A stretch of 64,000 bases of DNA from positions 25,234,001 to 25,298,000 of the forward strand of contig JANJGN010000026.1 in the NCBI GenBank assembly GCA_026770705.1, given 5' to 3'. Below are positions 2,675 through 54,657 of this stretch, piece after piece (within the stretch, counting starts at the first letter, position 1; every line of letters begins with the position of its first letter). Under the pieces are notes generated by a model. It searched no databases, was not told where the DNA came from, and worked only from the letters and a program-made list of their open reading frames with translations. The position numbers and the translations under genes were made by a program. The DNA is from Isurus oxyrinchus. Taxonomy: Eukaryota.

Positions 2675-3151
2675 CTGTGGGGAGAGTATTTCTATTTAGC
2701 TGCCCTGATTTATTTCTCAGGTAACTTTTGGGGTTGATGGGCCGTTTCTGGGGGATAGACACAGTGACGTGACATTGTGTAAATTAATATCACCCTGGAC
2801 TCTTACAGGACATTGTGGAGCAGGGTCTGTTTCACAGACACCGGCTGCAGTCATAGTGAGCGAAGGAGGCAGTGTACAGTTGGATTGTAATTATACAGCG
2901 ACAAGCAGCAACCCTGAGATATTCTGGTACCGTCAGCATCCCAGCGGATCCATGGAGTATCTGCAGCGGAGGCATAGGTACAGCGAGAACACAGAGAGGT
3001 TCCTGGGGGACTGTTTTACAACGGATTATGATTATGTGAAGAGCATCGACCCGCTGAATGTTTCTAAAACAGAACTGAGAGACTCTGCGGTGTATCACTG
3101 CGCACTGAGGCCCACAGAGACACCGAACTGGGCTGAACCTGTACAAAAACT
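2675..3151 (+). pseudogene. TCR alpha/delta-type V segment (V1): open V exon, but leader lacks ATG
   Basis: Leader 2675-2720 (CTG-WGEYFYLAALIYFS, in-frame TAG just upstream), GT donor 2721, AG acceptor 2807-2808. V exon 2809-3112 with LDC..FWYRQ..DSAVYHCALR. RSS CACAGAG(3113)-23-ACAAAAACT(3143-3151). Confidence 0.88.
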
Positions 3152-3469
3152 GTCGCTCAACATAGCAATGCCTTAGCAATCATTTTGATCAGTAATGAGT
3201 CTGAAATGATCCCTGAAAATGGTGATATTTCACATTTTTAATTTTAATATTATTTATTTTATCATCCTTTGTGCTTAATAAATACATTACTGAACTATCC
3301 AAAGGGGGGAAGTTTAGCAAATGAAAGTAGAATTCTTCTATAACGTCTTTCATGATGTCCAACGTGTTTCACCGTCACTGTTATCATGAAATGTAGGAAA
3401 CGGAGCAGCCAGTTTGACCCCCGCATGATCTTCCAATCTGTAATAATTAATGGACTGCCTGTTTTTTTT

Positions 3470-4490
3470 TTAAATTCGTTCAAGGGATATGGGCACCGCT
3501 GGCTCGGGAGTATTTGTTGTCCAATCCTTATTGCCCTTGAGATGGTGATGGTGATTCCCCTCCTTGAACCGCTGCAATCCATGTGGTGTGTGTACACTCA
3601 CAGTGTTGTTAGGGAAGCAGTCCCAGGGTTTTGACCCAGAGACAGTGAAGGGACTGCGATATATTTCAAAGTGAGGATGGTGAGCGGCTTGAAGGGAAAT
3701 TTGTAAGTGGTGTTCCCACACATCTGCTGCCCTTGCCCTTCGTGGTCGCAGTGGCCGTGCTTTTGAAAGGAACTGCCTAAGGAGCCTTGGTGAATTCCTG
3801 CAGTGCATCATGTAAATGGTACACACTGTTGATACTTTGTGTCGGTGGTGGAGGGAGTGAATGTTTGTGGATGTGGTGCCAATCAAATGGGCTGCTTTGT
3901 CTTGGATGGTGTCGAGCTTCTTGGGTGTTGTGGGAGCTGCAAGTGGAGAATGTTCCATCCAACTCTTTACTTGTGCCTTGCAGATGGTGGACAGGTTGGG
4001 GGAGGAAGGAGATGAGCTACTCGACAGAGGAATCCTAACCTCTGCCCTGCTCTTCTAGCCCCAGTATTTATTTGCCTAGACCAATTCAGTTTCTGGTCAA
4101 TGGCCACCCCAATATTGTTGATAGTGGGGGACTCAATGGTGGTAATGACATTGAATATCAAGCGGCTATGGTTAGATACCCTCTTGTTGGAGATGGTCAT
4201 TATCTGGTACTTGTGCGGCGTGAATGTTATTTGCCCCTTGTCAGCCCAAGCCTAGGTGTGGTCCAGATCTCGTTGCATATGCACATGGACTGCTTCAGTA
4301 CCTGAGGAGTCTTGAATGCTGCTGAACATAGTGCAATTATCCGCAAAATATCCACACTTCTGACATTATTATGGAAGGAAGGTCATTGATGAAACAATTG
4401 AAGATGTTTTGGCCTCAGACCCTACGCTGAGGAGCTCTGCAGTGATGCCCTAGAACTCAGATAGTTAACCTTCAACAACCACAGTCATTT
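3470..4490 (-). mobile_element. L2/CR1-group LINE 3' fragment
   Basis: Decayed RT C-terminus (MEHSPLA..KKLDTIQDKAAHLIG..SLHHR) plus 3' tail; same family recurs at 13330, 32640, 40800 and 58000. Confidence 0.8.
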
Positions 4491-5464
4491 CAGTGACAGT
4501 GATTGGTGGAGAAATATTGGAGAAATATTGTCCAGGCCAATTCCCCTTCTCTCCTTCAAAATAGTGCTCATGTGATCCATGATGTCCAAGTAGCCGGTGT
4601 TCTCAGTTTAATATCTCAACTGAAAGCTGGCACCTCTGATGGTGCACCATCCCCTGAGGACTAAGCTGAAGTATCAGTATAGATCCTGTGGGTCAGTTCT
4701 GTAGAGAGGGGCAGAATCCTGAAACGTGTTCTTCAGAGGAGATCGGACGAATAACTGAGTCTCGGCTGACAAGTGGTGCTTGCAGAATGGCCTTTGTATT
4801 CTTATGCATGTGCATCATTCTGCAAATGACTACGTGGTAAAAATATACACCCTCAGGTAAATGAGTGCAAATATTTCATAATGGTGATCAGGCTGATGAC
4901 TGACACATGGGGCTGAGTGGCTTCTCGGGGTCTCGATCACCAACCCTCCCTGATCAGGAAGCCAGGGGCTCCTAAGTAAATTCCCGGATTGTTGTTTCCG
5001 ACAGATTACGGGTGTCCCGTTGACGGGACATTATCTGTGAACAGGCTGGAGATAGAATTCACGTAACCCCAGGACGTCATCAACACAATCCAGGAAAAAG
5101 GATTGAAATAAAGAGAAGGAAAAAAGTACCGCTCCACCTGGAAAACGGGGGCCATTAAATTTTACCCCTAGAATCAATTCTCACTCGGAAAGAGTAATCG
5201 CCTTTCACAGACTCAGGATGTCAGTAAGCACTTTCCTACCCAAGGGAGCATGTTTCCAGTGTAGTCGCTGTTGTGGTGTTAGTAATATTATTTACACAGA
5301 TGACAGTGCGAATGTTTAATTCTCTGTCAGGAAAGATTGTTACTCTGACCCTTGTCGTGGATTTGGAAGCCCATGCACTGTCCAAATACTTTGAAGTTGC
5401 GTCCACCAGTAACCAAAACATTTGGGCCCAAAAGGTGGATTGGCCGCTCTAGGTCTCTCCCCCG

Positions 5465-5497
<33 letters not shown>

Positions 5498-5506
5498 CTC
5501 TCTCTC
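5465..5506. repeat. (CT)n/(GT)n microsatellite
   Basis: Direct reading. Confidence 0.9.
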
Positions 5507-6089
5507 ATTGTGATATCCTTTTATTTCGGACTTCGCAGTGACATTGGACCATAGAATACAATGATTTATAGGGGTTAATCTCTAAATCTCTTGTGTAATT
5601 CACCTATACATTATTGCCCTATATACACTATTGTTTACAGTAACGTGTCACGGTGCCAGAATATTTCCTGTAATCACCAGCTGTCAGAGCGATGAACTGA
5701 CGGCTTAGTAAGTTTTCTCCAAAAATAAGGTTATGGAGCGCCATCTAGTGGAAGCTTGTCGGTAAAACAACGGCTTTAACGTGTTCTCAAATATTGCTTC
5801 ATGATATTGCTGCATCATTATTCTGCCACATTATTATGGTGATTATGGCGTTGGTTTTATTAGTATTGCAACTTCTCCCTTTTCATTGTTTTGCTCCTGC
5901 TAAATGTACTAATTAATATTCATTCTTAGATTAGTTGCCTGCTTTCTGACATGCCTCCTTCATTAAAGACATGTTCGTTTGCATAAATAGATTACTTTCT
6001 TGCTCATGAGTTTGTGGTTGTTCATTTCGGAAGAATGTAAGACTTGCATGCACCCTAATCATCAAATAACGATGTCAACCAAATTTCAG

Positions 6090-6593: not shown

Positions 6594-7032
6594 TAGTTCA
6601 GTACAGCCTTCTCACCTCCTTGCCTCCCCGTGTTTCACCGCATTGTACTGCACCGCAGCATCTGAGAACTGAACCAAGTGAACGGTGAGAGTAGTACAGT
6701 CTTTCTCCCGGTCCACAGGTACTACAACTCTTCCCTCAACTCTTTCATTACTGAATATGGGGACGAGATGGTCGGCAGCTAGATTGGAGAATTGCCGGTA
6801 CAAGAATATAAGTCCATTTACAGCAAAAGTAGAGTTATGGAAGCGAAATGGTTGTCATTGCGTTCCCGATAAACCAATATCTGATTTTCTTCCGAGTGGC
6901 AAGGATTAGCTGTCAAAACAAGAATGAAATTAACATAATGATATATACAAGGGAAAATAAACAGATCAATCCACCCATCCGCCAATCCTACCTGGGCCCA
7001 TCTGAGTTAATGGTTCTGTAAGAAAAGCCCAT
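6594..7032 (-). pseudogene. TCR V pseudogene (V2), decayed
   Basis: Leader remnant 7032-6992 with GT donor; V exon ~6909-6633 reads LYRQFSN..TLTVHLVQFSDAAVQYNAVK (W41 and C104 lost). Degenerate RSS CACGGGG-23-ACTGAACTA. Confidence 0.75.
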
Positions 7033-7661: not shown

Positions 7662-8110
7662 TGTTTTTGTACTGGGTTCTAGTTGTGATTTGAAGTTGTG
7701 CTTCACTGCACAGTAACACATCGCCCCGTCCTCCACACGCAGTTCACTTATATTGTGGTAACCGTTCTTTTTAGACTGGTCAGCATTCGCCAGATATCGT
7801 CCTGAAATGTCATCTTTCTTCAGTGCTAAGACATTGGAAATAATCCATTTTGGTGGCCGTGCCGTTTGCTATCGACACCATTGCTTATACACCATATTTC
7901 ACTCTGTTTATTCACAGTCTAACCGCACCGAACCCCCTTCTGACATCGTTATTGCAGCCGTGCCCTGAGCTATTGGACGTGCGCATAGTCCGGTGTGGTA
8001 GGGGAATGAAATATCAAGCGATTGAACAGTGTTAATCAAAATTTGTTTGTAGCTGTGTGAGTTTATGGAATCACCTATCTACCCAGCAGCCCATCATATG
8101 GATATTTCAG
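7662..8110 (-). pseudogene. TCR V pseudogene (V3)
   Basis: V exon ~7990-7701 with EGGSVRLDC, WCR*QTARPPKWII (stop) and EDGAMCYCAVK. RSS CACAACT(7700-7694)-23-ACAAAAACA(7670-7662). Leader end approximate. Confidence 0.8.
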
Positions 8111-8666
8111 ATTGTTAGTTGTTTCAAATATTGTCGCAACCTCTGCACAATAATCTACTGATCTGCCTCTATGAACTTAGACCAGTATTTACTGTTCAAC
8201 AGCGCCACCAGTATTATCAGGAACATTGTGAGTGAGTCACTCTCAGCGAATGCGAATGGTATGAGTCGGAGATTAGAAATGAGAGAGGGAACACAGGCAC
8301 TGTTCAGATCATCGTTCCACCCATACACTGCAGGGGGCCAGGCCCATTGTGACCTCACTGAGGAAACTATCACTATTGGCTTTGGCGTTTCCACCAAATG
8401 ACTTAGTGACGCCCATGCTTGAACTTGGCCCCCTCCGCTGGCAAATTCGGTTCAATGCCTGTTCGGATGCGGCCGTTGAGAGGATTCATGGTTTATGGAA
8501 ATGCACATTCAAGACACAAATGTACCCCGGAAGCCTAAATTGGAGCAGTTTAGACGCAGCCTTTGTTGCTGCTGATGTTTATGTCGGAGCGCAATGTTAA
8601 ACCTGTAGAAATCATCGCTGGAGTTCTCTGTCCAACAATGTAGAAGTAATGTCAAGATTTTGGAGC

Positions 8667-9083
8667 AAGTGTGGGGCTCTTTGGCACAGTAATACACTGC
8701 TGTATCCACGCTCTCCGTCTCCTCAATAACCAATTGGCCCCGTTTGTCCTCAGTGGAAAGTTCCAAATCGAATCGGTCCATCATCCCTTTGCCAGCCGAG
8801 AATCTGCTTATTATACTCCAGCCCCTGACCGGATTTCTGTTTGTACCAGTACTTTCCGTTAAATCGGGACATGTCATAGGTGCAGTTTATCCGCACCGAA
8901 CCCGCGCTCTGGACTGTTTTCGCAGTGGGAAACTGGGACACTTGTTCCGAGCGACATCGACCTGTAAAAACATTCAGACAGCGAAACGTTGAAGCAACAT
9001 GAATATAAATAGACACTCTCTACAGGTTACTGAATATATCCCTTACAAGTTAGTAGCACTAGAATGACGGGGGATAGATTCAT
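8667..9083 (-). pseudogene. V pseudogene (V4) with VH-like FR2/FR3 motifs
   Basis: Leader MNLSPVILVLLT 9083-9047, GT donor; V exon 8961-8674 reads SVRINCTY..YWYKQKSGQGLE, frameshift, then IISRF..VDTAVYYCAKE. Heptamer CACACTT; no recognisable nonamer. Confidence 0.85.
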
Positions 9084-10899
9084 TTGCTCCGCGTAATGCA
9101 TCCTTGCAATTAAAGTATCAGTAAGAAAAAGAAGCAGAGCTCACATCAGCAGAGCATGGAGCGCCTGAAAGACGTCAATACTCGGTTAATGTAACCGCCA
9201 GAGATCATGTTTCAGTCACGTGGTTTTGCTGCTCTTGGATTGGTTGGAAATACCCTGTTCTCGTGATGTAAGGATGTTGTTTTTGACCCCCTGCTCCTTT
9301 CTCCATCGGTTCCCATCGGATCATGTCATTTGTCAAAACGCCAGAAATTCCCTTCACTCCTTGTGGCGGGAAGTGAGCAGAACGTAATAACTTTGCGGCA
9401 CTGATTCTCTAAAGGGACAAACTTGGGCTCCGGGTCTCTGTAAACATTTGAAACTCTGTACAAAGATTGCCTTAAGGAATGAAGGAATCCGGTTGTTAAA
9501 ACCCTATCTTACCAGTTCCCGTGCTGGAGTTGAACATTCAAGCTCCCATAGTTGGAAGAGTTCTGAATCTGGATCGGGACAGAACCAAAGGAGAAACGCA
9601 TTGATTCAAATGAGTGGCCCGTGAGGAAATTTCCGTTCGCAGCAAAGAAGCAAGCTCAATGTTGTGAATTTGCAGTCACATGACGGCCGGACCGGGTATA
9701 AGTGACGGATTTCCATTCCTGAAGCAGGTTAGTGAACCAGGTGTAGTTTTAAAACAATGTGATACTCCCGTGATCTTTGTTTCGCTTTGAACCCAAGTCT
9801 CCAGGTATTGATCCTCTGGATTACTCTCAACAGCAGCATTACCACTATTCTATCGCCTGGTCTTTTGCTCAGTCCGCTACTGAAGGGCACAAGGACTGGA
9901 GTCTGTCCCCTGGGACTGGATTCTTTCAAATAAATTAGCATCTGAACGCTTTGCTATAAGCCAAGGATGTCGGGAGGAAACCTTGCAGACTGTACTTGTA
10001 TTAAATCTGTCTCGCCTCTGTCCAGCAACAGCTTCCGTTGGTCGCTCCCTCTGCTTGTCCCGCCTTGCCCGCTTTGTCGGTGCTCCCTGTTTGTCATGGT
10101 TTGGATGAACAGTCCAGTAAGATGGGTAACTGCATCGCTTCTCCGACCGAGGGCATCCCGGCGTGTTCCAGAGTCACGAATTATCCAGCGCAGTTCTCTA
10201 GCGCTGCTCTTCATTATTATTTCACTTCTCACTACCTTTTGCTGCCGAACAGAAATCCATCCTTCCACCGACTGAAGTAATGTGGATATTAGAGTTTGTA
10301 ATCGGCGGTGGGTCCAACTCATTGTCTATTCACCCTCCTTCCCAACGTGTTTTGAATCTGATTTTCTTTAACACGCCCGCATTTGATCTCCACATTTTGA
10401 GCTTGATTTCGGGATCGGGGTCATAGAGCCGCTGCCTCCAGGAATTAAGGCAGAACAGCGACAAGGATTTTATCTTGCAATTATAGTACTGCTCACGTCA
10501 GTAAGTGTGGTTTCTCTTGGTATCGGCTACAAACTCAAACTCATCCCAAGTTTACAATGTTGAAATTTGCAGGTGGTAATGGAGGGAAACAGATTATGAG
10601 GGGGAAAATGTTTTTCTACAGAACTCAACAGCTTGGAGATATAGTTCACTTCGCCCATCCCGAGTGTGCAGCTGACCGACACAGCAGATTGGCAGTGTTC
10701 ACTGAGACTCTCAGCAACACCCTCCTCACGAAATTGCCCCCCGCCTTGTAAACCAGAAGCTCTGTCAGTTCACGTCAATTACAACAGTGCTTAAGTGTAA
10801 AAACTATGGCAACGGGGTTACTTCGAAAAGCTACCGCCTTCTTAAATTCAATTTCAATTATCAGCCAGTTCTTGTCTTTGAACAGCCACCAATAAAGAC

Positions 10900-11450: not shown

Positions 11451-13329
11451 GATTCTTGCACAGAATTGTGCTGTGGTGAGTCAGATCCTTGCTCTAGGAT
11501 CCTGACAGAGCCGGAGTCCGTTCTGCCTCAGCCGAGATCGAAGAGGGCCTCCTGTCTCTGACGAGGCATTCAGTTGGCCATTGGAGCAGAGGCTGACCTT
11601 TCACCCTGTGGCGTTTGCCTTGAAACCCAGGAGTCTGAAGGAGCGAGATCCATCTTCTGAGATGGAGCAGGAACACATCAGATGGGTTCACATTGCCATT
11701 CCTCTCCATTTAAGAGCCCACAAAATGAGAAAGAGCCACATTTGCTTCAGAAGCGAAGGTGGGGGCGGAGAGGATTGAGGGCCGCTCTTGGAGCAGAGGT
11801 GTGGTGGAGATTTTGCGGGTTCCGCAGTGTTAATTACACTCCCATTAATGCCCCTTACAACGGATTCAGGAAGCAATGACAGTATGGATGTGAGATCAGT
11901 ATAAGTGATTGAATTCTCCACATCTTTTCCAAGGTACCGGCGAGTGGGACAGTGGCTATCGTTTCCCCGCAGACGGGTGAATGCCACCCATTGAGTCCGA
12001 GTGAATTCCAGGAGCGAAATGAAATTTGGAAGCACAGATTGGATGATGGATAATTCGAAGGCTGACCAGCGGGTGAAACCGGCTCCAGGAAAGGAGCAGG
12101 GCGATTTCTGGGTTTCGTCTGCCACCTGTTGGAGGAAATCAAAATTTCGCCTCAGCGGCCGAGGGTTACTCTTCAATGCCGCTTCGGCGGCAACTGCCCC
12201 AAATCGGCTGTGTTAGCAATTTAACAGTCGCATGTCGTAGGCGACAAAGTGCAGTGAACAGGTCAGATTTTCAGGAGACCTCCCAGCTGAAAGAATAGAT
12301 ACAGTATCAATAACAGTGCCCTCTCCCATTGGCGGCAGAGTTCAATTCTTGCCGCTACACATTTCAGATAGTATTTTCCACTATTTTAAAGCTTTTATCT
12401 ATTGTATCGATCATTGTCTTCTTCGCACCTTACTAAGGTGATGGTAATAAATGAACTAAGTAACTAAAGCAATCATGTAATTATGTAATTATGCCATTCC
12501 CATTTGTGAGTCTGTCTCCTGTGATCTAGTTTATTTTCGGAAAAATATACTTTATTCATGCAATATCTGAAACAAAGCGTTTCAAAATGGCCATCACAAA
12601 AAGTGCAATCACATTTCGGTTTTCCACATAGATCATGAGGTGCTTCAATACAATCAATGAACATTACATGCATTCGAACCTGGTCTTTCCACATTTCTAC
12701 ATAACAGTTGCACTTTAATACACTTCAATGAAATTGTGACACATGTAGTACTCACTGCATGCAGTTCTCTCTTTGTCGCTGGGTAAAAAACCTGGAACTC
12801 CCTAACTAACAGAACTGTGGCTGAACCTGCACCACATGGACTGCAGCGGCTCAAGAAGATAGCTCACCACCAACTTCTCAAGCGGCAATTAGGCATGGAC
12901 AATAACTGCTGACCCAGCCAACGAATCTCACATTCCATTTGAATAACAAATAATAGTGAATGTCTTAAAGGAGCCTGTAGAAAACCTCCCACCGAGAGTC
13001 CCAGTCAGTGCCCACTAGAGGGCTCCCTCACACCAATGATGAGGAGGGCGAATTCAGTCTCCACAGTGAGTTTCAAGGAGACTGCTGGATTTATCAGAAA
13101 ACAGCGCAAAACTGAGCTGTGCGATGCTGAGGGTTTGTCCCGCTTGATAGATTTTGAAATGCCTTCTCTTGAACACAATCTTCTCCCCTTCATCCATATT
13201 TTCCCGTTTGAATGCAGGTGACAATGAATTCTGGATTTATATTAGTTTATTTCGACTCGCAATATAAATCAAAGTCAAATTTCGTAAAAGCATCTATTTC
13301 TTTTTTTCATCTTTTGCTGTCCTATTTTT

Positions 13330-13710
13330 GCTGGTGTTCCCATCTACCTGCTGCCCTTGTGCTTCTAGGTGGTAGAGGTCGTGGGTTTGGAAGGAGGTGT
13401 CTAAGGACCCTTGGTGAATTCCTGCAGTGTAATATGTAGATGGTACACACTGCTGTTACTGTGCGTCGGTGGTGAAGGGAGTGAATGTTTGTGAATGTGG
13501 TGCCAATCAAGCACCCTACTTTTTTTCTGGATAGTTTCAAGCTTGAGTGTTGTGGGAGATGCACACACCCAGGTAATTGGAGAGTATCCCATCACACTCC
13601 TAACTTTTGCCTTGTAGATGGTGGACAGGCATTGGGGAGTAGGGAGTGAGTTGCTGGTCGCAGGATCCCTAGCCTCTGACCTGCTCTTTAGCCACAGTAT
13701 TTATATGGAT
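13330..13710 (-). mobile_element. L2/CR1-group LINE fragment
   Basis: LIGTTFTNIHSLHHRRTV..HCRNSPR motif; same position as 32640-33040 in the duplicate copy. Confidence 0.8.
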
Positions 13711-14100
13711 AGTTGTGTCCAGCCTTGTGATGATTAAACCAAGCATTGAGCACCCTCAGTGTCTATTCTGTTTATGGATGTCTCCCTCATTCTAGAATGT
13801 ATCCCTTCTCCATTAACCTTGATTTACTGGTGATGTTGAGCAACCAGTGAGGATTGGACAGGGTGTCTTCAGGTATAATTGCCTTTATTGTCTGTCTGGC
13901 CAATCGGAATCTGCAGTTTGTTTGAGTTTCCCGGCCGCTACTGGGAAAAGTTGGGTGACAGTTTGATCCGAGGTTAATTTGATTTCCTCTCGCTGTGTGT
14001 TTCTAAGCGGCTGGCAGTGCTGCTGCGCATTGTAGCTTCATCCACCCGTGATTCTACACAAACCCCAACAGACAGGAGCTCCCACTAACAATGCAAAGGC

Positions 14101-14581: not shown

Positions 14582-14739
14582 TGTCTCTGTCCACCCTGTC
14601 AAAGATCTGCTCGATATTTGAAGACACCCTTTCTAATGCCTGCCCTCAATAATCTGTTGTCATGTCTCAGGATGTTTGCACGTCACTGCCTGTGTCACCT
14701 GTGGTGCAGCGAGACCGGCAGGTTTTGAGAGAGCAGAGA

Positions 14740-14920
14740 GTCAATGAGCTCGATTGAACGTGGGCGGTCTCGTGTGAGCTCAGAGGCAGGGTGAGCCAGT
14801 GTCAGTGAGACATATTGAATGTGGCGGCCCAGTGTGAGCCAGTGTCAGTGAGAAATATTGAATGTGAGCGGTCCGGTCTTAGCTCAGAGACAGGTTGAGC
14901 CGGTGTCAGTGTGAAACCTC
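14740..14920 (+). repeat. Imperfect ~40-60 bp repeats upstream of single-exon V family members
   Basis: GTGAGCCAGTGTCAGTGAGA.ATATTGAATGTG units; homologous arrays at ~16640-16910 and (minus) ~20905-21000. Confidence 0.6.
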
Positions 14921-41380: not shown

Positions 41381-41389
41381 AATAACAGT

Positions 41390-43200: not shown

Positions 43201-43649
43201 GTTATTCCTGCACTGCACAAGTGCAATAACGTGGAAATTGGTTGGGGTAGAAATAGTGAAGAGAATATAGCAAGATGGTGGGAACGGTAAGGATGCAAAA
43301 ATTCTTTGGGGAACAGTTATCATGGGGGCCTGTTTAGATGTGGTGACTTGCCCTCCCTTGCATCCCAGATTTGTGTTCATAAACCACAGATCTCTCTTAT
43401 CTTGCTGCTGTTTAAATTGAACAGTTTAACTCCTATTTCTAGGGCCTCGTGCAAGAAAGTAAGGGAATATACTAATGTAATATAAACAGAGGACAATTAC
43501 ATAAATAACTGAGACGGGACCTCGTGTTACAGAAGCAGAATCATGGACTAGAGCAGTAACAATATGGCAGGCCCAGTATAGCATGAATAGAGAAATGGTG
43601 GAGTGCAGCAATATTGATACAAGTTGCCCTAAAGTCCCGCAGAACCAGA

Positions 43650-46030
43650 TAAGATATGGGTGGAGATCCCTCCTTGTGATTACCACCTACTCCCCTTCCT
43701 CAGCTGATGAATCTGTGCAGCTTCATTTTTAGCACTACTTGGAAGAAACACTGAGGGTAGCAGGGGCAACGAATGTCCCGCGAATTTCCAAAATCAATGA
43801 CCATTTGACAAGACCACTAGTGACCGAGCTGGATGAGTCCTGTATGACGTAGCTGCCACACTGGACCTGTCAAAGATGGTGATAGAGCCAACATGATAGA
43901 AAATCCTATCCCATCTCGTGCCCATCACACTATTGATATAAGTGACAGTGACACCTGCACTGTCCTTGTTGAAAACAAGGCCGGTATTCACACTGAGCAC
44001 ATTCTCTACTGTGTTGTGCTGCACTGCCCCTGTGCTAAACAGGATACATTCAGAACAGATCTAGCAGCTCAAAACTTGGCATCAACGAGATGCTGTTGGC
44101 CATCAGCAGCAGAATAATTGCATTCAATCCCAACTGTGATTCATGGACCACAATATCCCTCACTCACACCTTGGTGTGCCTATCCACAGCCCCCTGAAAG
44201 TAGCAGGGTAGGTAGATGAGGTGGGTAAGAAGGCATACGGGATACTTGCCTTTATTAGCTGAGGCATAGAGTACAAGAGCAGGGAGGTTATGCTGGAGCT
44301 GTATAACACGTTGGTTAGGCCATAACTGGAGTACTGCATGCAGTTCTGGCCACCACATGATAGGAAGGATGTGATTGCACTGGAGAGAGCACAGAGGGGA
44401 TTTACCAGGATGCTGCCTGGGCTGGAGGGTCTGAGCTATGAGGTTGTTTTCCTTGGAGCAACAAAAGTTGAAAGGGGACCTGCTAGAGGTGTAAAGGATT
44501 ATGAGGGGCATAGATAGGGTGGATAGGAAGGCCTTAGTAGAGTGGCCAATAAACAAGGGGCAGAGATTTAAGTTAAGAGATAGTAGGCTAAGAGGAGAGT
44601 TGAGGAGATTTTTCTTCACCCAGAGAGTGGTAGGAATCTGGGACTTACTGCCTAAAAGGGTGGTTGAGTCAGAAACTCTCATATTTAAATGTTCACTTGA
44701 ACTGCCATAGCCTCCAATACCATAGGCCAAGCATAGGAAAATGGGATTATTATCGTCAGATCTTTGTTGACCGTGCGTAAATGATGGGCCGAATGGCCTC
44801 CTTCTGTGCTGTACACGTCTATGAATCCATGATTCTAACATCCAGCCTGGGGACAATGAGGAATGTAGAACAGCAGGTTAAAAACAAAACTAGGCAGACC
44901 GGAAAATAATGAACCATAGTCTGAATCTAGAACAATGTACATAATGGAAAACAGGTCAAATCTGTCCCCTTGCTACTCAATCAGTCTACTTTTGATCATC
45001 AGACTTGCTCACCAAAGCTCAGGCTGGATCAGCCTGGATCAGCGAGCTTCAAATCTTATTTTAAACTTGGTCTGAACATGGGCAAGAGAGTGAAATTCCA
45101 GAGATGATGTGTGAGTGCTTTAGTACTTAGTGTCAAAGCAGCGCTTGACTGAGTGTGGCATCAAGAAGCCTTGGGAAGAGTCACGTCAATGGGAATCAGG
45201 TGGAAGTCCCTCCCTTGGTTGAAGTCACACCAGGCGCACAGATGCTGTTTTGTTGGAGACCAATCATCTCAGCACCAGAACATGGTTCGAGGAGTCACTC
45301 AGAGAAGTGTCCTTGACCCAGCCATCTTCAGCTGCTTCATCAATGACCTTGCCTTCATCCCTGGGTCAAGAATGGGGATGTTCGCTCATACTTGCACTGT
45401 GTTCAGTTCAATTTATGATCTCTCAGATAATGAAACCGTCCTTACTTGTTGCAACCCGAACTGGACAAAATTCATGTTTGAGCTGATAAGTTGCAAGTGA
45501 TATAAGCAACACACAAGCGCTAGGCAATGACCAACTCCAACAATAAAGAAACCAATCATCCCTCCTCAAAGTTCAAAAGGCATTCCCGCCGCTGAAACCC
45601 ACCATCAACGTCGTGTAGGTACTACTGAACAGAAACTGAACTCGACCAGACATATAAATACTGTGGCTACAAGGGTAGGTCAGAGGCTAGGGTTTCTGTT
45701 GTGAGTAACTCACCTCCGGGCTCCTCGAATCCTTTCCACCACCTGCAAGTCTGCAAGTCAGATGTCTGTTGGAAATAGTTTACTTTCCTGGACAAATGTA
45801 ACTGCAGCAACACTCAAGAATCTCCACACCAACCAGGGGAAATCAAGCCCTTGATAGGCACCTCATTCAGGAGTTAAACATTCATTCCATTCACCACAGA
45901 CACACAGTGGCTGCAGACTGTACCATCCACAAGACGCACTGCAGCAACTCGCCAAGGCCCCTTCAACAGCACCTTCCATACCTGTGACTCCACCTCCCAG
46001 AATAACAAAGGCAGCAAGCACATGGGAACA
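43650..46030 (+). mobile_element. Nested LINE fragments (L2/CR1-group element interrupted by a CR1 3' fragment at ~44190-44820)
   Basis: Flanks homologous to 38870-41150; insert reads VRP*LEYCMQFW..ALERAQRGFTRMLPG..FFTQRVVGIW. Confidence 0.75.
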
Positions 46031-46299
46031 CAATGCCCTGCTTCCTCCAACACATACAACTCTATAGGTGGGAAATTGGTCTTGGGCACTGGTAAAGGAG
46101 AAGCAATATCTGAAATCTAATTCTGCTCACTGCGCTGAAGGTGAATATCAAGTGCTGCGTAGCATGTACGGCCAATCTGTTACTGTCCATTTCAGGCTAC
46201 TGCCAAATACCGATTTCTCGCCTAACATCTTTATTTATAATATTACCTCTCATCTCACAGAAACATGGAGTAATGCAGCCATAATTGAAGCAGAGGCAT

Positions 46300-46440
46300 A
46301 GATAAAAGCTAAACATTGCGGATGCTGGAAATCTGAAATAAAAACAGAAAATGCTGGACAAACTCAACAGGTCTGACAACACCTATGGAGAGAAAAACAG
46401 AGTTAACGTTTCGAGCCCGTATGATTCTTCTTCAGAAACA
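46300..46440 (-). mobile_element. Penelope-like terminal fragment with minimal hammerhead-like core
   Basis: Minus strand CTGAAGA-AGAATCATACGGGCTC-GAAAC-GTTA (46435-46404). Confidence 0.65.
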
Positions 46441-46714
46441 TAGTCTAGCGCCCTAGTTAAAATGTCCAGGTCTGGGAAATATAGACATAGTCAAGATGTA
46501 ATACAATATGAACCGAGACAGGGCCTAATATAATATAAACGGAGACAGGGTCCAGTGCAATGAAAACTGTGATGGATTCCAGTGGAACATCAACGAGATA
46601 GGGTCTATTTTAATACAAACAGAGGCCTGACCAGCACAATAGAAATTAAGTAATTCCCAGGACATTAAAATCGAACCAGGACCCTGTATAACATGGGAGG
46701 GACGATCGTGCAGT

Positions 46715-47230
46715 GGGAACGTCACTGAATTAGTAACCCAGAGATCCAGGCCTTTCCTGGGGATAGGGGTTTGAATCCTGTTATGACAGCATGTGGAATC
46801 CAAATTCAATTAATAAATCTGGAATTAAAAGTTCGTCTCAATAATGGTGACCATGAAACTATAATTGATTATATTAAACATCCATCTGGTTCACCGATGT
46901 CCTTTAGAGAAGAAAATCGGCCGTCCTTACCCAGTGTGGCCGACATTTGTTCATGGGAACGTGGGCGGCACTGGCTAGGCCAGCATTTATTGTCCATCCT
47001 TAATTTCCCTTGAGAACAGTGTGGCTTATTAGGCTATTTAAGAGTCAACCACATTGCTGTAGGTCTGCAGTTACATTCAGTCCAGACCAGGTGGCATTAG
47101 TGTGACCCAGATGGTTTCTTGGTCATCAATAGATTTGTGAAATCAAATTTCATCATCAGCCGTGGTGGGATTCAAGCACAGATCCCAAGCGACTTACCAG
47201 CCCAGTGAGAATACCACTACCGCCGCTTCC
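46715..47230. mobile_element. Two opposed Deu-like SINE fragments
   Basis: Plus copy ~46715-46945 and minus copy ~46950-47230, homologous to 7160-7500. Confidence 0.6.
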
Positions 47231-47979
47231 CACACAGAAAACTCCAGACCCACAATTTTATGCAGCCCCATTCTCCGTCCATTTGTTTAATTGCCCACCA
47301 CTATTAACGACTGGATGTGACAGGACTGCAGAGGTAAAATCCAATCCCTTGATTGTGGCATCTTCCAGACTTTGATATAAATATTGGTATTGACTGGTGC
47401 AGTACTAATTGAAAGGTATAATGAAATATAAACAGAGACAGTGTTTGGTCTAACATAAAAATAGATGGAGTTCAATTTAAAAAGACAGAGACAGGCTCCA
47501 GTGCAGTATTAATTGCGACAATACCTGCTTCATAGAATGTATCCAACAAGATTTCAAATCCATCTGCTGGCCAAACCTTGCAATTGCAGCTACTGTGAAA
47601 ATGTCGCTGTCATATTAGATCTTTGACATTATTGTATGAAGAATCCACTTCCCCAGATGTAATACCACATTGCCTTCTGTGGGAGGTGTCAAAATTTAAC
47701 AAAATTCAACTAATTGCAGATGAACATGGTTGATTAGCGCACATTAAAGTCAGTACCAGAGTAAAGCGGCCTAATTCCTGGTGATGTATCTTTGTTCACC
47801 TTGATTAAAGGGAGGGCGTTGATCAGGGCGCTGTATAGAGATGGCGGGAACTTTAACGTCCACCTCAACAAACATAGTGTTGGGGACAGGTTATTGGTTT
47901 ATGATACCACCTGAAAGACAGTTAAGGTCATTTTCTTCGACGGAGACTCCCAGGATGTTAAGGTGGGATCTCAAGTTGA

Positions 47980-49570
47980 AGCACAAGATGCCATCTGTGG
48001 CCTGTGTCTGTGTGTGTGTGAGGGAGAGGGAAAACTGAATTTCATGAAGATCCTGGACAACCTTCCATCTATGAAAGGTCACAGACACACAATGGAAACA
48101 GATCCATTTCAAATGTGCTGGTGGCTGAGGAGGCCAATTGTTGTGAGGCAGGTTCTGCCGGAAGTGCTGCACATGAAGGTACAAAATGTCGTTGTGAGTT
48201 GTTTTTTTCCGGCGTTGGCCTCGATTGCCAAACCGCTGTAGCTGCTGGTCATCACGGTGTTTCACACCAACCCACTGGAGGTGTCGCCATTTTCCTCAGT
48301 CGTCAGTTAGTTACACTCAGTTGTGATGACAGGGCCCTCACTTCAAGCATCCTTGAAGCGGAGCTTTGGGCGTCTGACTGGTTGTCTGCCTCCGGCTCCC
48401 TCACCATACAGAAAGTCCTTGTGCATGTGACCATCTTCCATCCTGTGGACGTTCCCAAACCACCAGCACCACCTCTGTTTCATGAGCTCTGCAGTCTTGA
48501 GAGCTCTGCCTTTGAGAGTACCGCTGCATTCGTGACTTTATCCTGCCAGTATATACCCATAATGCGCAGCAGGCAATGCAGATGGAAATTGTGAAGCTTC
48601 TTCCCTTGATAACTGTAAGTCGTCCATGTTTCACAGCCATACAGCAAGGTGCTGAGAACACAGGCTTTATAAACCATTAGCTTAGTCCTCAGGGTCAGTT
48701 TGATGTTATTCCAGGGGCGTTTCCTGTGTCACCCAAAGGTGTAAGTTACTTTTCCCATGCGGGTATCAAGTTCTGCATTAAGGAACAGGCTGCCTGTCAC
48801 CGTGGAACACAGGTGGCAGAATTTTCTTCCATTCGGGTGTTATTTAGTGTTATCAATGGCGGAAATGCAACACCTTGTCCTATGACTCATGGTTTTTCCC
48901 ATGTTTATAGTCAGGAAGAACAAGTTACAGGCATGGGAGAGTCAGTTCGTCAGTCTTTGTGGTTGAGTTTCCGCTTTGATGACAGGGTTATCAGTGTGGA
49001 GGAATTCTCTGATCAGGATGCGATGTGTTTATGTCTTCTCTTTCATCCTTATAGATTGTAGAGCTTGCCGTCTGACTGAGTTTGTAAGTCGACTCCTTTC
49101 ATATCTACAGGGAAGGCAAAGATCAGCATCATGGGGAAGAAGATGCCAAACCGAGTGGGGCAAGGAAATAGACCTGCTTCACTCCGTTCTTTATTCCGAA
49201 TCTGTCGGAAGTGGAATAATCGATCTGTACAGTGCAGTGCATATTGTCATGGAAGGAGTGAACGAGACTAGGGAGCTTTGGTGAACAGCCAATTTTCCCC
49301 AAATTCTTGTAGAGTCCTGTTTTGCTGACGGTGCCGAGCGCATGGAGCAGATCATGTCTAGAGTATACCTTCCGACACAAACACCGCACAATGCTTGGGC
49401 CTGCAAGTAGATGAAGTATTTAAAGTATGACCCGAGCAAAGGCTTTCCTCGTGACTCTATGAGTGAGATATCTCTGTTGTTGTTGCAGTCTCTTCTGTCG
49501 ACTTTATTTTCAGGTAGTGTGATGATTTTTGCATTTTTCACCTCCTGTGGAACGGATCTTATCTTTCAGC
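47980..49570 (-). mobile_element. RTE-clade LINE RT fragment
   Basis: DCNNNRDISL, FGIKNGVKQ..LAP, VYKACVLSTLLYGCETWTTY and FHLHCLLRIMGIYWQDKVTN motifs. Confidence 0.85.
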
Positions 49571-50599
49571 AGAGAAGAAGGTCGTAAAAGCTGAGAAAGA
49601 TAATAATCATATACACCAATTATTACCAATTCACAAATGTAAATAATTGTACTCACGAATTATCAACAATTCACAAAAATAAATAATTATATTCACCAGT
49701 TGGCATCAATTCACAAAGATAAATAATTATATTCACCAACTATTTTCAGCATTATATTTCATATAAAATGTAATTTCGGCTCATATAATATCATTAACAT
49801 TAATTGAGCTCACACTGACCATTCTGTCAGCAAGGAATCACATCTGTCCCAGAATTCAGTGGGAAATTGAATTAAATCAGACCGAGGAAATGAGCAGCTA
49901 CCCAGCAGCCTCTTCGCCTTATTGACAAGTAACCAGCTCATCATCACACAGAAGCTCCTGATGTATGAATGGAGTGAGTGAGGATTTGTAAAATGATGGC
50001 ATAAACGAAACTATCTGGACCGAACGTTAAGTTAATAAATAGTTAAAATCAGGTTTGTTATTTTCATCGTTTGGTAGGTAATGGAACATTTGCGGCTCTC
50101 CGGTAAGTTTCACATTATTTCTGTTTCCACGGTAATAATGCTTAACCTGTTGCCTTCACTAATTTTGCTGAGGTTATGTTGAATGTTTTGTTGGACATGA
50201 AAGGACCACATGTACCAAGTATTACAACCCTCCACCCTAAACAGAATGATGCACCCTCTTTCTGGCTGAAAGATGATGATCCCCCATCAGCAGGGAAGAA
50301 TTATCAATACCGCAGGGACATCTCCAGCCTTCTCTTGGTGACGTTCAGCTCGTTAGTTCCCGATAGCCTGGGGATGTAATTCATCCAGAAAATCTGGAAG
50401 AACTGAAGGGATTAGACTGACAGAAATGAAATACAGAGCTTGCTTCAAGATATGAAGTAGTCAAGCACAAAGATGAGAATGGAGGACAGCATCTTTCAGG
50501 CGCATCGATCAAGCCATTCATTGAATCCTTAATTAAAATATTCAGGCACCCATCTATCATTGATTCCTGCATCACTGCAGTCATCCCTCTATTACTTGG

Positions 50600-51002
50600 C
50601 AGGCAGTAGTATTGTATTAATATCACTGGACTATTAATCCAGAGGCCCAAGCTATTCTCTTCGGGGCTCGAATTCAAATCCCACAATGGCAGCCAGTGGA
50701 ATTTAAATTCAATAATAAATCTGGGATTTAAAATTGGTCCCAGTGAAGGGAACCGTGAAGCTATCATCGATTGTGGAAAAAACTCATCTGGTTCACTCAT
50801 GTCCTTTTGGGAAAGGAAACCTGCCACCGTACCTGGACTGGCCTACCTGTGACTCCAGATCAACAGCAATATGGTGGACTCTAACTGCCCTATGAAATGG
50901 CTTAGCCAGGCACTCAGTTCCAGGGCAATTCGGGGCAGGCAACAAATGCTGGCCTTGCCAATGACTCCCACATCCCGTGAAAGTGTAAAGTAGCAAAAAA
51001 AA
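50600..51002 (+). mobile_element. Near full-length Deu-like SINE
   Basis: Homologous to 7160-7500, with an A tail. Confidence 0.72.
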
Positions 51003-52807
51003 TCACACAAACATGCGTGTTTATCTGTTACAAAATGTGTCCTCTCTCTGAGTCCTCTCTGATTGTCTGTAATTCTTTCTATCCATCCATCCATCCATCC
51101 ATCACAATATTATGATGTGTTGGAGAGATCCTCCAATGAGCTGTTGATGCTAACAGGGTGTCAGAGAAGCTGGATAACTTTTCTTTCCTGAGGGATGGGA
51201 AAAGTTCACATAGGTTCATAACTTGAAAAAATAAAACTGACTCCAGTGCTGTTGCTGGGTAGATTTGTTATAAATATGCCTTGTTGACAATGTTAAGGGT
51301 TTGAAGTTGGCCTGCAGCTAAGCGGTCAGTACTGAGGAAACAGATCTTTGATTTACTGCAGAAACCCCCAGATGCTTCCTGTAAACAACACTGGACATTC
51401 GAGCGTCCCTGACTGCAGCCGGCTGGCCTGCTGCTAAATACTGTGTGGGGCAGATTGGCCTGGATAGGAATGAACAAAATGGGATTTAGCCATTCAAACA
51501 ATAAATCTTTTTGTCGCACACGAAAGGCACTTTTTAATTGGTATTTCATCCAAGGAAATGTTTTAATTAATGCCGTATTCACTGAGATTAAACACGATCT
51601 GGAAATATTAAATTGACCATATATTATTTAATTTATATTATTTTTAAGCAAAGGGCATTCCAGTTATTAAAGCTGGTTTATTAAGAACTTCATGAAGTGC
51701 GAGAGAGCGATGTTGATGGTCCCAATTCCCCAGTCTAATGAGTTGAGTAGAAAGGCAAAAAATTGAAAGGAATTAAATTAAAAGAAAATCATAGAATTGT
51801 CTTGAACCCGCAGGAAGTCCTTGAATATTCTCCGTGTTGTGCACTTCATTTAACCTGAGGGATCTCTTATACCTGATTAGCACCGTGCACTGTACAGTTT
51901 AATTTGTGCTGATTTCAATTATTTAACAGTTCTGTCTTAGCTGTCAATGAGTGGGAAAATGACCAGTTCATGACCTGCTTCAGTGGAAGATAAAACCTTT
52001 ATTCTTGTGACATTCTGTAAAGTCCTGATATCCTGTTTTCCCAATATCAGTGAATGGTAGACAGCCGGTAACCAATCAAATTAGATGAAATGATTTGGAT
52101 GCTGAAGGATAACTGTGCTGATCTCCGTATTCGTTCTGATTCATTAACTTCTCTGTCAAAAGTTGTAAATTTTATGTTTTTCTGTCAACTGTCTGTTTAA
52201 TTATCAGGCAGGCGGGCATCTTTTACCGCTAATTTTCACAGGGAGGCCTTCGGGATGGGGCAGCTCGAGAAATGCAAGGAGAGACATTGTATAATGCGAG
52301 GAGATTCTTCTTATCTCCGGACCCAAATTGTACAGCGACAGCCTACCACACTGTAAGTAGAATCACTTTGTTCATCTCCCGCATTTAGTTACATAAATCA
52401 ATAATAATTCCTATGACTGATACTTTATTGTTGTAATGAGACAGAGACCCGGAGTTGCTGCAAAACAGACTGACAGTCCCTTTATTCCCTAATAATATAA
52501 TTTATTTTTTAAAGTTCCATGCCTTGTGAGGCAGTGTAGAAATAAATGGACTTAATTTACAATGGAATTTTTTTTTTATTAACAGATGTTCAACTGAAAT
52601 TTCACCATGAGAGCCAATGGAGACATTACAATGAATCCATTCAGCCAAATATCCCAATATAGATAAAATGTCCACTTTTAACAATAACCTATTGTAAATA
52701 TCTGAGTCCATTCTGTTGGGGATATGGAAGGTGGGTCATGGATCCAATCGCCGCCTCCACCAGGGAATCAACAGACGGCAACTGGAAACTTGCCCCCTTC
52801 TGCCCGG

Positions 52808-52818
52808 TATTTAAATAC
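52808..52818 (+). promoter_or_regulatory. TATA-like element of the VH promoter
   Basis: GTATTTAAATA about 95 nt upstream of the VH ATG, with a CCAAT at ~52744; assigned by position only. Confidence 0.45.
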
Positions 52819-52906
52819 CACTCACTGGGACCGAAATCCAACAGTCAGGAAGCTGGTTTGTTCACTGAGTTCTGGACAGAATCATTTTCCCTAAGTGATC
52901 AGAAGG

Positions 52907-53424
52907 ATGAGGTCGGCGATTTCTCTCAGTTTGTTGCTGACTTTCTTATCAGGTGAGTAGTTTTTATTGTCCAAGCCTCTCACTGTTACTGTCTCAGTGT
53001 TAACCTCTCTCTGGAATGTTACAGAGTCAGGAATCATTTCACCAGGATTAATCCTCGGCGTTTTTGACATATTTTTACAGGTGTCCTTTCGGATGTTGTG
53101 TGGACTCAGCCAGAGGCAGAGACCGGGCGTCCCGGAGGCTCCCTGAGACTGACCTGTAAAACCAGCGGCTTCGATCTTGGCAGCTATACCATGTATTGGG
53201 CCCAACAGGTTCCCGGGCAGGTTTTGGAGTGACTGGTTAGCTATTTTAGTTCAAAAGGCAATTACTACGCCCCAGGAATTAAGAATCGATTTACTGCGTC
53301 CAAAGACACTTCAAGGAGCATCTTCTCCTTGGATATGAAGAACCTGAAGACTGAAGACACCGCAGCTATTACTGTGCAAAACAGTCACACCGCGAGGAAC
53401 CAGGGCTGGAGCCGAACAAGAACA
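52907..53424 (+). pseudogene. IGHV: Elasmobranch IgM-type VH pseudogene
   Basis: Leader MRSAISLSLLLTFLS 52907-52952; V exon from 53081 reads [46 protein letters not shown] (TGA 53230)..[13 protein letters not shown], 1-nt deletion, YYCAK. RSS CACACCG(53386)-23-ACAAGAACA. Confidence 0.95.
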
Positions 53425-53795
53425 GATCGAGAGGGACTCAACAACTTCCATCATAACCTGACGGTCAGTACTTGTTTTAAATGTAATAGTAACTGTAATG
53501 ATCAGAACCTGACAACAAGCAGCTCCTGACAAAACTAACACAGAGAAATTTTAACAGTAAAACCTAACAAACCAATCGATATAATGGGCTGAGCTTTTGG
53601 CTGTGCTTATATTTATTGTTAACGGTTTCCGCAAGTACAGACCTGGATATAATGTTCATTTTAACATCGCTGAAATTTGGAGGAGGTCTCTGTTAATTTA
53701 TTTTGTAAATTGTTGCATAAAGACTAAACTATACCAGAAGTAAACGTCTATTTGAAGTGAATATTGAGAGGCAGCACTGAACAGAGAGTGGATGC

Positions 53796-53875
53796 AGTTT
53801 TTGTGCGGGTGTATTTCACTGTGGTACTACAGTGGGTCACAGTGCTGTGCACAGCGGCATCCTCATACAAAAACC
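53796..53875 (+). other. IgH D1 segment (53824-53837) with 12- and 22-spacer RSSs
   Basis: AGTTTTTGT-12-CACTGTG | GTACTACAGTGGGT | CACAGTG-22-ACAAAAACC. Confidence 0.95.
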
Positions 53876-54185
53876 TCAGAGAAGGAGTTTGTTCAAATTG
53901 GTGATCAACAATACAGCAGGATCGTCAAAGAAAATGAAATTTAAATAAAATAATGGGTAGAGGTAATATTTGTCTGTAATAAGATATAAAAGTCTTCCAC
54001 TTTGTTCGTGTTGACGGACACGCTAAATCTGCAGAGGTTTAAAAAGTATTTCATTCACGTTTAAAAATATAATGACCAGTACAAGCTGAAATATTTCACT
54101 GATTCACTCTTAAGCGAGTAGGAATCAGTTTTTGGAAAACGCAGTGAGATTACATCTCTGTATTTTAGAGTGAACTGTCTGCCGC

Positions 54186-54254
54186 AGTATTTGACACGGT
54201 GTGTCTCACTGTGATATACTGGATGGCACAGCAGTTACTGTCAATACAAAAACC
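54186..54254 (+). other. IgH D2 segment (54214-54226) with 12/12 RSSs
   Basis: AGTATTTGA-12-CACTGTG | ATATACTGGATGG | CACAGCA-12-ACAAAAACC. Confidence 0.93.
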
Positions 54255-54571
54255 CCTCAGCACTAATTGAGTCTGCCTGGGTCAGTGCTCGCTTTTACAA
54301 TCCAACTATATTTACATTGAAGTCTTTTTTTATGTCCAGCACTGCCCAGAAAACATGGTTTAAGATGGAAAAGCTGTGATAATTATTCATTCATCAGTTG
54401 GTGATTTCAATAACATGTTCATGAAATGTAAAACATGAGGGCCATTGATGAATAGCTAAAGATATCTACAACGCAACTATAATTTCGTGAAGATTCATCG
54501 CGATCTTACTTTGCCTCTGAATTATCAACATTTAAAATAATGGTGGATTTCTGTGTTTTTCTTGCAGCGAC

Positions 54572-54657
54572 AGTTATTGTATGGCATAGTCCAGGGAATG
54601 TAACATGTGACATCATGGGCTACTGGGGACAAGGGACCATGGTGAAGGCGACGGCAG
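54572..54657 (+). other. IGHJ: IgH J segment (54610-54657) with 22-spacer RSS
   Basis: AGTTATTGT-22-ACATGTG, then IMGYWGQGTMVKATA and a GTAAGA donor at 54658. Confidence 0.93.

Follow-up and report, generated by a model that had tools for sequence, protein, structure and literature searches.

The window analysed here, a 64-kb stretch of DNA from the lamnid shark Isurus oxyrinchus, contains an IgM-type VH-D1-D2-JH cassette at 52,907-54,657 on the + strand. The parts of the cassette and its 3' flank are as follows.

52907-52952, + strand: VH leader exon, from ATG to a GT donor at 52953, followed by a phase-1 leader intron
53081-53385, + strand: VH V exon, a pseudogene, with the RSS directly 3'
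53386-53424, + strand: VH RSS, CACACCG-23-ACAAGAACA, score 12/16
53796-53875, + strand: D1 with its signals, coding part 53824-53837, both RSS near-perfect
54186-54254, + strand: D2 with its signals, coding part 54214-54226, a 12-RSS on both sides
54572-54657, + strand: JH, coding part 54610-54657 (YWGQGTMVKATA), a 22-spacer RSS on its 5' side and a GT donor at 54658
54658-64000, + strand: 3' flank of JH, 9.3 kb of AT-rich DNA with LINE pieces and low-complexity arrays at 59.3-62.4 kb

The 5' signal of D1 is a 12-RSS (AGTTTTTGT/CACTGTG), and its 3' signal is a 22-RSS (CACAGTG/ACAAAAACC). The signals of D2 are imperfect: the 5' nonamer matches at 6/9 positions and the 3' heptamer at 5/7. The RSS of JH is composed of the nonamer AGTTATTGT, a 22 spacer and the heptamer ACATGTG, which is eroded (4/7). 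The order of spacers, VH 23, D1 12-22, D2 12-12 and JH 22, is exactly the one claimed in the first-pass annotation, and it is the classical horned-shark pattern. The V, D and J segments of a minicluster are all present, namely a VH with a leader and a 23-RSS, two D segments flanked 12/22-23 and 12/12, and a JH with a 22-23 RSS. The first 46 residues of the VH match antibody VH/VHH chains, with E values down to 8e-27. In word depths from short reads, which range from hundreds to thousands, the cassette appears as a member of a high-copy family.

The VH-D1-D2-JH order agrees with the canonical shark IgM minicluster, and the J carries the WGQGT motif and a splice donor. The segments are separated by 438, 376 and 383 bp (VH-D1, D1-D2 and D2-JH, respectively), inside the range of 250-500 bp given for shark IgH clusters (review, PMC5192425). 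However, the cassette differs from the canonical unit in several respects: the VH frame has two breaks, the J heptamer is reduced to 4/7, framework 4 of the J deviates (MVKATA), and no C-mu was found within 9.3 kb. It should be mentioned that IgM pseudogene clusters are also carried by the nurse shark (PMC5192425).

The open VH reading frame of a functional cluster is lost here through a stop codon and a frameshift. In the assembly, an in-frame TGA at 53230-53232 stands in place of the Trp of GLEWLV, and, ahead of YYC, loss of one nucleotide at about 53362/53363 puts the sequence out of frame. A short-read contig of single-copy depth (~34) showed no differences from positions 53305-53441, the frameshift site included, and a high-depth contig from paralogous copies has one extra C after position 53362. 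The JH heptamer is canonical or near-canonical in the paralogues and in a low-depth contig from a second organism, a probable ortholog, whereas it is eroded here. Judged from these lesions, the cassette's own VH cannot yield a heavy chain. RAG may still be able to cut the D and J signals, and there is no sign of their upkeep for that role.

Upstream of the cassette, 14 TCR alpha/delta-type V elements lie at 2,814-36,607, as located by tblastn of the window's own V open reading frames against the window combined with three-frame reading.

2809-3151, + strand: V1, V exon 2814-3113 open, YHC instead of YYC; RSS CACAGAG-23-ACAAAAACT (3113-3151)
6630-6812, - strand: V2, decayed FR3-like fragment without RSS
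7911-7973, - strand: V3, short FR1 fragment with stops
8638-8959, - strand: V4, frameshifted pseudogene ending in ...DTAVYYCAKE, RSS lost; paralogue of V14
10470-10707, + strand: V5, decayed remnant with stops
14101-14441, - strand: V6, one in-frame stop; RSS CACAATG-23-ACAAAAACT; inverted paralogue of V13 (74% amino acid identity)
15148-15431, + strand: V7, V10-family pseudogene with stops and a frameshift
17176-17446, + strand: V8, V10-family pseudogene with a stop and the conserved Trp lost; good RSS, CACAGTG-23-ACAGAAACC
19118-19204, - strand: V9, fragment of the FR2 region
about 20357-20731, - strand: V10, open leader and V frame of 111 codons, V exon 20357-20671; RSS CACAGTG-23-ACAGAAACC
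26817-27146, + strand: V11, pseudogene with a stop and the FR2 Trp lost; RSS CACACTG-24-GCAAAAACC
29244-29786, - strand: V12, V exon open (at about 29265-29589), after a leader exon at 29723-29786 and a phase-1 intron; RSS CACTGCT-22-ACAAAAACC
31918-32260, + strand: V13, frameshifted; RSS CACAGTG-23-ACAAAAATT
36428-36638, + strand: V14, truncated after FR2/CDR2, with FR3 deleted, and fused directly to RSS CACAGCG-23-ACAAAAACC

The number is close to the "about 15" segments proposed earlier, where nothing was said of their strands (seven on the + and seven on the - strand) or of how few are open. The V exon is open in V1, V10 and V12 (3/14), and the other 11 elements carry stops, frameshifts or internal deletions or are fragments. 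V12 is apparently a complete V gene. No leader ATG was found upstream of the V1 exon. An RSS with a 22-24 spacer scoring at least 13/16 is located exactly at the 3' end of 8 of the 14 elements, as against 15 of 2000 random 130-nt windows, and all recognisable V RSS have 22-24 spacers. For V7, no RSS with a CAC heptamer was detected in the RSS scan; its heptamer by eye is TACGGTG.

Classification of the V elements as TCR alpha/delta-type relies on best matches to mammalian structures in the PDB sequence set rather than on a tree built with curated TRAV/TRDV/TAILV sequences of sharks. By this measure V10 is closest to TRAV12-type alpha chains, and V13 to TRDV3 and TCR alpha. V12 hits TCR alpha and V-delta-1, a single light chain sharing first place, and the matches of V1 and V4 are TCR alpha mixed with multi-domain antibody constructs. 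Since V domains of TCR alpha/delta are the best matches of the V elements and the first piece of the VH matches antibody VH, the array gives no sign of grouping with non-TCR V domains, and its assignment as TCR-type in the first-pass annotation seems to be correct. No TCR D, J or C segments were found within the 64-kb window.

The V array contains an inverted duplication and an assembly gap, and it is separated from the cassette by a long spacer.

11455-14741: left arm of the inverted duplication, 79-82% identical to the right arm
30945-31120: assembly gap (N) inside a compound (TG)n/minisatellite, between V12 and V13
31599-35174: right arm of the inverted duplication, with a U6 snRNA-like insertion at 33262-33371 that is absent from the left arm
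36639-52906: spacer of 16.3 kb, between the RSS of V14 and the leader of the VH

A second inverted pair is formed by 14846-15630 and 20989-20177 (70% identity). The spacer contains LINE fragments on both strands (RVT_1 and repeated LINE tails) and a tandem repeat at 42.5-43.1 kb; no gene other than the LINE fragments was recognised in it, in agreement with the separation of about 16 kb noted earlier. The 10-mer CCAGCAGAGG borders the gap on both sides in the same orientation, as the last letters of the left edge and the first of the right. The gap is in non-coding DNA between V12 and V13, so that no reading frame runs across it.

The IgH minicluster unit and the TCR alpha/delta-type V exons are thus interspersed on the assembled window, with the gap at 30945-31120 inside. 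This arrangement resembles the elasmobranch antigen-receptor complex (AgRC), in which IgM/IgW/IgNAR miniclusters occur in linkage with TCR alpha/delta, with synteny to PSMB5 and the TCR alpha/delta constant genes (PMC12227049). According to that paper, IgH clusters show linkage with TCR alpha/delta, the clusters having TCR alpha/delta-type V exons between them, in the white shark and in three further species (Flajnik et al., Sci Adv 2025, PMC12227049). The earlier statement that the IgH genes of sharks usually form stand-alone clusters is therefore out of date. The window shares with the AgRC the presence of both kinds of element on the same DNA and the position of its V exons outside a canonical translocon array, and a lamnid, the great white shark, is among the published AgRC species. 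It differs in that this copy is degenerate, with a dead VH, an eroded J signal and 11/14 dead TCR-type V segments, and in that C exons are out of view.

The window is likely a decaying stretch of such a complex, with its mixture of IgH miniclusters and TCR alpha/delta-type V segments. The cassette would be the pseudogenised front end of an IgM-type minicluster (psiVH-D1-D2-JH), whose C-mu exons, if any, would lie beyond the window. The V patchwork upstream probably arose through local duplication, in several cases inverted, in a region where LINEs are also present. Most of the TCR-type V segments would have died after duplication, and at most V10, V12 and perhaps V1 might still feed the TCR repertoire. 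The adjacency of Ig and TCR segments would then reflect shared ancestry and the duplication history of the region, and not a locus-specific hybrid receptor.

Three other explanations bear on parts of this model. The juxtaposition might be artefactual, produced by a misjoin of V array and IgM cassette in the repeat-rich spacer or at the gap. The gap does sit in a minisatellite, the spacer is packed with LINE copies also found elsewhere in the window, and the cassette comes from a high-copy family. However, the sequence from 31121 to 64000 is gap-free, and contigs of single-copy depth match the cassette exactly. In addition, the inverted paralogues flanking the gap are just 79-82% identical, which marks them as duplicates of some age rather than collapsed copies, and interspersion of Ig and TCR segments has been published for four species (PMC12227049). 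A misjoin is accordingly quite improbable; should the join at the gap be in error, proven cis linkage to the cassette would shrink to V13 and V14, two dead elements. As to the 3' side, the V-D-D-J unit might have been cut off from its own C-mu exons. No Ig or TCR constant exon was detected anywhere in the 64-kb window, the 9.3 kb past JH included, by a search for constant-domain open reading frames and C1-set motifs, and the stretch after JH is filled by LINE insertions and 3 kb of low-complexity arrays, within which a G-rich array of 20-24-nt units lies at 61537-62427. The window ends 9.3 kb past JH, however, and C-mu could be situated just past 64 kb, which would make the unit an entire cluster whose VH is dead rather than a stranded front end. 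Separation from the C-mu exons is rather unlikely.

The remaining explanation is a working hybrid locus, in which TCR-type V segments rearrange to the IgM D1, D2 and JH (a "reverse chimera") or the VH is supplied to TCR delta, the D and J signals being kept through use. The recognisable V RSS all have 22-24 spacers and can formally pair with the 5' 12-RSS of D1 and D2, so that the RSS compatibility in cis put forward in the first-pass annotation holds under the 12/23 rule. The signals of D1 are near-perfect, and rearrangement of IgHV to TCR delta is established in the nurse shark (cited in PMC12227049). However, the VH is dead and could not be donated. V1 alone is both open and in the deletional orientation, yet a leader ATG was not detected upstream of it, and joining of V10 or V12 would require an inversion spanning 24-33 kb. 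Decay of the JH heptamer in this lineage relative to the paralogues and the probable ortholog, together with the imperfect D2 signals, argues against selection on the cassette. There is, furthermore, no constant exon within 9.3 kb of JH, and no RNA holder was found. The hybrid neighbourhood proposed earlier thus stands in the sense that V-D-D-J and TCR-type V segments share one assembled stretch, but its functional sense is weak, half of the V elements being inverted in addition to the lesions listed, and a working hybrid locus is very improbable. It is extremely improbable that the dead-VH cassette has been kept as a D-D-J(-C-mu) acceptor, joined to V1 by deletion and to V10 or V12 by inversion, to give TCR-V/IgM chimeric chains. 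Such chains, if real, would mirror the IgHV-to-TCR delta rearrangements already known.

The preferred reading, a decaying stretch of the AgRC, makes the window an ordinary and largely decayed example of a neighbourhood that is already known, since it was described in sharks and rays in 2025 (PMC12227049). Had the linkage of Ig and TCR been new, it would explain Ig-to-TCR "trans"-rearrangements as cis events and bear on a common origin of antibody and TCR loci; this point was made in the same year from chromosome-level shark and ray assemblies (PMC12227049). The window does provide a base-by-base view of how a mixed stretch is built up, by duplications, some inverted, in LINE-rich DNA, and of how it decays, through loss of the VH, the J signal and 11/14 V segments, which is useful for annotation. 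It also cautions against inferring function from 12/23 compatibility alone.

Two further systems can be compared with the VH of the cassette. The term TAILV denotes an IgH-like V found in association with TCR delta (PMC12227049), and TAILV and IgHV-to-TCR delta rearrangements have been described in the nurse shark (Criscitiello 2010; Deiss 2019; cited in PMC12227049). The VH likewise is an IgH-type V near TCR delta-type V segments, and its 23-RSS could pair with a TCR delta D. However, it is a pseudogene in its own V-D-D-J cassette; taken as a lone V without its own Ig D and J, TAILV was rejected as an identity for it, because D1, D2 and JH lie 3' of the VH. The VH-delta of frogs, birds, coelacanth and monotremes is an antibody-type V in TCR alpha/delta loci, a single V in a translocon that is used with TRDC. 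In both VH-delta and the window, an antibody-type V is in cis with TCR alpha/delta V segments, whereas VH-delta genes are single V segments and the window holds a complete Ig-style recombination cassette.

The window is a mixed Ig/TCR stretch, built by duplication, partly inverted, and mostly dead now. Searching the window with its own V-like ORFs (tblastn, with a three-frame reading of each match) located 14 V-type elements, spread from 2.8 to 36.6 kb, with seven on each strand. A spacer of 16.3 kb lies between the last of these and an IgM-type V-D-D-J cassette, which confirms the side-by-side arrangement noticed in the first-pass annotation. Only three of the 14 V exons are open; the remaining eleven are damaged or fragmentary. 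The elements, numbered in window order, are as follows.

V1, 2814-3113, + strand: open V exon
V2, − strand: fragment only
V3, − strand: fragment only
V4, − strand: frameshift
V5, + strand: fragment only
V6, − strand: stops
V7, + strand: frameshift
V8, + strand: conserved Trp lost
V9, − strand: fragment only
V10, 20357-20671, − strand: open V exon
V11, + strand: stops
V12, 29265-29567, − strand: open V exon
V13, + strand: frameshift
V14, 36428-36638, + strand: internal deletion, RSS directly after FR2/CDR2

For V12, a leader exon, a phase-1 intron and an RSS can all be read, and in V10 one open frame covers leader and V. A leader ATG was sought for V1 and none was found. In eight of the 14 elements, an RSS with a 22-24 spacer and a score of at least 13/16 lies precisely at the 3' end of the V. 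Since 13/16 is attained in just 15 of 2000 random windows of 130 nt, these eight are taken as genuine recombination signals. V14 extends from FR1 to roughly CDR2, where it passes directly into a near-perfect 23-RSS (CACAGCG-23-ACAAAAACC); its FR3 is wholly deleted and the signal is nonetheless intact. The leader and V domain of V10 form an uninterrupted frame of 111 codons (20399-20731, − strand), the coding part having no leader intron. This layout is unusual among Ig/TCR V genes, and is shared by V7 and V8, the dead paralogues of V10.

The array was classed by phmmer best matches among all PDB chains. V10 matched TRAV12-type alpha chains best, and V13, representing the V6/V13 family, matched human TRDV3 and TCR alpha. 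The best matches of V12 were TCR alpha and V-delta-1, and a single light chain tied at the top; those of V1 and V4 were TCR alpha, intermingled with multi-domain antibody constructs. On these matches the array is of TCR alpha/delta type, a class assigned by PDB similarity rather than by a labelled shark tree. A grouping with non-TCR V domains, which would have undone the earlier reading, was thus not seen. Light-chain V segments were considered and rejected, as the tie concerns V12 alone and TCR alpha/delta dominates every list. An exhaustive search of representative proteins gave 624 relatives of V10, the ten best of which are hypothetical proteins (bamboo shark, catshark, elephant shark) and fused multi-V gene models; these names are uninformative, which is why typing relied on the PDB rather than on a labelled phylogeny. 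A word-indexed protein search with V10 returned no match, a blank made uninformative by the length window and make-up of that database.

Self-comparison of the window revealed an inverted duplication, in which 11455-14741 aligns with 35174-31599 at 79-82% identity. The left arm carries V6 and the right arm V13; V4 and V14, which neighbour them just beyond the aligned arms, are paralogues as well. A second inverted pair (14846-15630 and 20989-20177, 70% identity) contains V7 and V10, to which V8 is related. The mixed orientation of the V elements is therefore explained by old local inverted duplications rather than by assembly collapse. Fragments of LINEs turn up repeatedly, at 3.5-4.5, 13.3, 32.6, 40-41.4, 45-46 and 58 kb. 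In addition, U6 snRNA is matched over its full length (Rfam RF00026, 92.9 bits) at 33262-33371 on the + strand. The match falls in a right-arm segment (about 33272-33504) for which the left arm gives no alignment; a candidate empty site is the corresponding left-arm point, at about 13076-13088.

The assembly contains a run of N at 30945-31120, inside a compound (TG)n/minisatellite. Its left edge ends with CCAGCAGAGG and its right edge begins with CCAGCAGAGG in identical orientation. Most simply, the run of N stands for repeat units whose number the assembly left unresolved. Being non-coding and placed between V12 and V13, the gap interrupts no reading frame. Were the join false, the provable cis partners of the cassette would shrink to V13 and V14, both dead.

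The IgM cassette has the following parts.

52907-52952, + strand: VH leader with GT donor
53081-53385, + strand: VH V exon, with RSS CACACCG-23-ACAAGAACA
53824-53837, + strand: D1, with a 12-RSS (AGTTTTTGT ... CACTGTG) on one side and a 22-RSS (CACAGTG ... ACAAAAACC) on the other
54214-54226, + strand: D2, with a 12-RSS on each side
54610-54657, + strand: JH, YWGQGTMVKATA, with GT donor, preceded by a 22-spacer RSS

This reproduces exactly the RSS order read previously (VH-23, 12-D1-22, 12-D2-12, 22-JH). The segments are 438, 376 and 383 bp apart, inside the 250-500 bp reported for shark clusters (PMC5192425). The first 46 residues of VH match antibody VH/VHH domains with E values down to 8e-27. 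In the assembly sequence, a TGA (53230-53232) replaces the Trp codon of GLEWLV, and one base is absent at about 53362/53363, so that the frame is lost ahead of YYC. The J heptamer, ACATGTG, agrees with the consensus at 4/7 positions. Identification of VH as a TAILV was rejected, since VH is followed by its own D-D-J.

Short-read contigs from two very close organisms, A and B, were compared with the cassette. They cover it in separate pieces and are uninformative on expression; none of the RNA runs searched contains the cassette. The cassette family is high-copy, with word depths of hundreds to thousands. Contigs of organism A at single-copy depth (about 31-35) show zero differences from the window, and one of them covers 53305-53441, the frameshift site included. 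This exact match shows that an assembly slip is not the source of the frameshift. A high-depth contig has one additional C after 53362 and presumably derives from paralogous clusters. A low-depth contig of organism B is without the extra C, which suggests that the frameshift predates the split of A and B; cross-mapping of paralogues is the alternative. The loose ends of the high-depth copies carry the canonical J heptamer CACTGTG. Over 54388-54645, a low-depth contig of organism B differs by three substitutions and one extra base, and a near-canonical J heptamer is restored. Judging from these two comparisons, erosion of the J signal in the lineage of the window seems to be recent. A 137-nt contig from organism B run X19, guessed to be RNA, joins 53412-53464 to 54569-54645. 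It links the sequence immediately 3' of the VH RSS directly to the JH RSS and JH, omitting 1104 bp with D1 and D2. Both RSS are retained and GT-AG ends are absent; therefore the joint is no RAG product, coding or signal, and no canonical splice either. It may come from a paralogous cluster that lacks D segments, or the contig may be chimeric.

The first-pass annotation took the stretch as a hybrid neighbourhood in which Ig and TCR segments are RSS-compatible in cis. The mixed stretch and the compatibility stand: the RSSs of the TCR-type V elements are formally 12/23-compatible with the 12-RSSs of the D segments. However, this holds for every VH or TRDV-type V against every IgH or TRD D, and it is not evidence of function. 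Its premise that shark IgH genes form stand-alone clusters is out of date, and the neighbourhood it proposed is already known: Flajnik et al. (PMC12227049) described linkage of IgH clusters with TCR alpha/delta in sharks and rays, and argued that this proximity accounts for IgHV-to-TCR delta rearrangements, NAR-TCR and TAILV. V10, V12 and perhaps V1 may still feed the TCR alpha/delta repertoire if D-J-C is within reach. With its own VH the IgM unit would be unable to encode a heavy chain, and D1 and D2 could still be cut by RAG. The eroded state of the J heptamer and of the D2 signals speaks against such use being under selection.

No Ig/TCR constant-domain exon was found in the whole window by inspection of stop-free stretches and a C1-set motif scan, and no NAR-type V was found. 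A motif scan gave no further J and no TCR D or J; the J scan also overlooked the true JH on account of its 4/7 heptamer. The IgM unit may be an entire cluster whose VH is dead, or else a front end cut off from its C-mu. In the spacer that separates the VH leader from V14, only LINE remnants (RVT_1) were recognisable, and among ten spacer and downstream ORFs the sole Pfam match was RVT_1, sub-threshold. The spacer also holds a tandem array (42484-43134, + strand) with overlapping periods of about 105-270 bp and 68-72% identity.

The 9.3 kb 3' of JH are taken up by AT-rich DNA, pieces of LINEs and low-complexity arrays, the arrays making up about 3 kb. One of these, at 61537-62427 (+), is purine-rich and G-rich, with roughly 38 copies of a 20-24-nt unit (consensus about GGAAAGGGCAGAGAGGTAGG). 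It lies on the same strand as the cassette, 6.9-7.8 kb 3' of JH, and holds several GAGCTGGGG motifs of the kind seen in mammalian S-mu. Sharks are without conventional switch regions according to reviews (PMC4279169, PMC8201067). G-rich low complexity also occurs at about 18.0 and 38.1 kb, so the array may not be specific to the DNA 3' of JH. C-rich arrays occupy 60703-61151, and from 59.3 to 60.2 kb there is CA/CT-rich low complexity.
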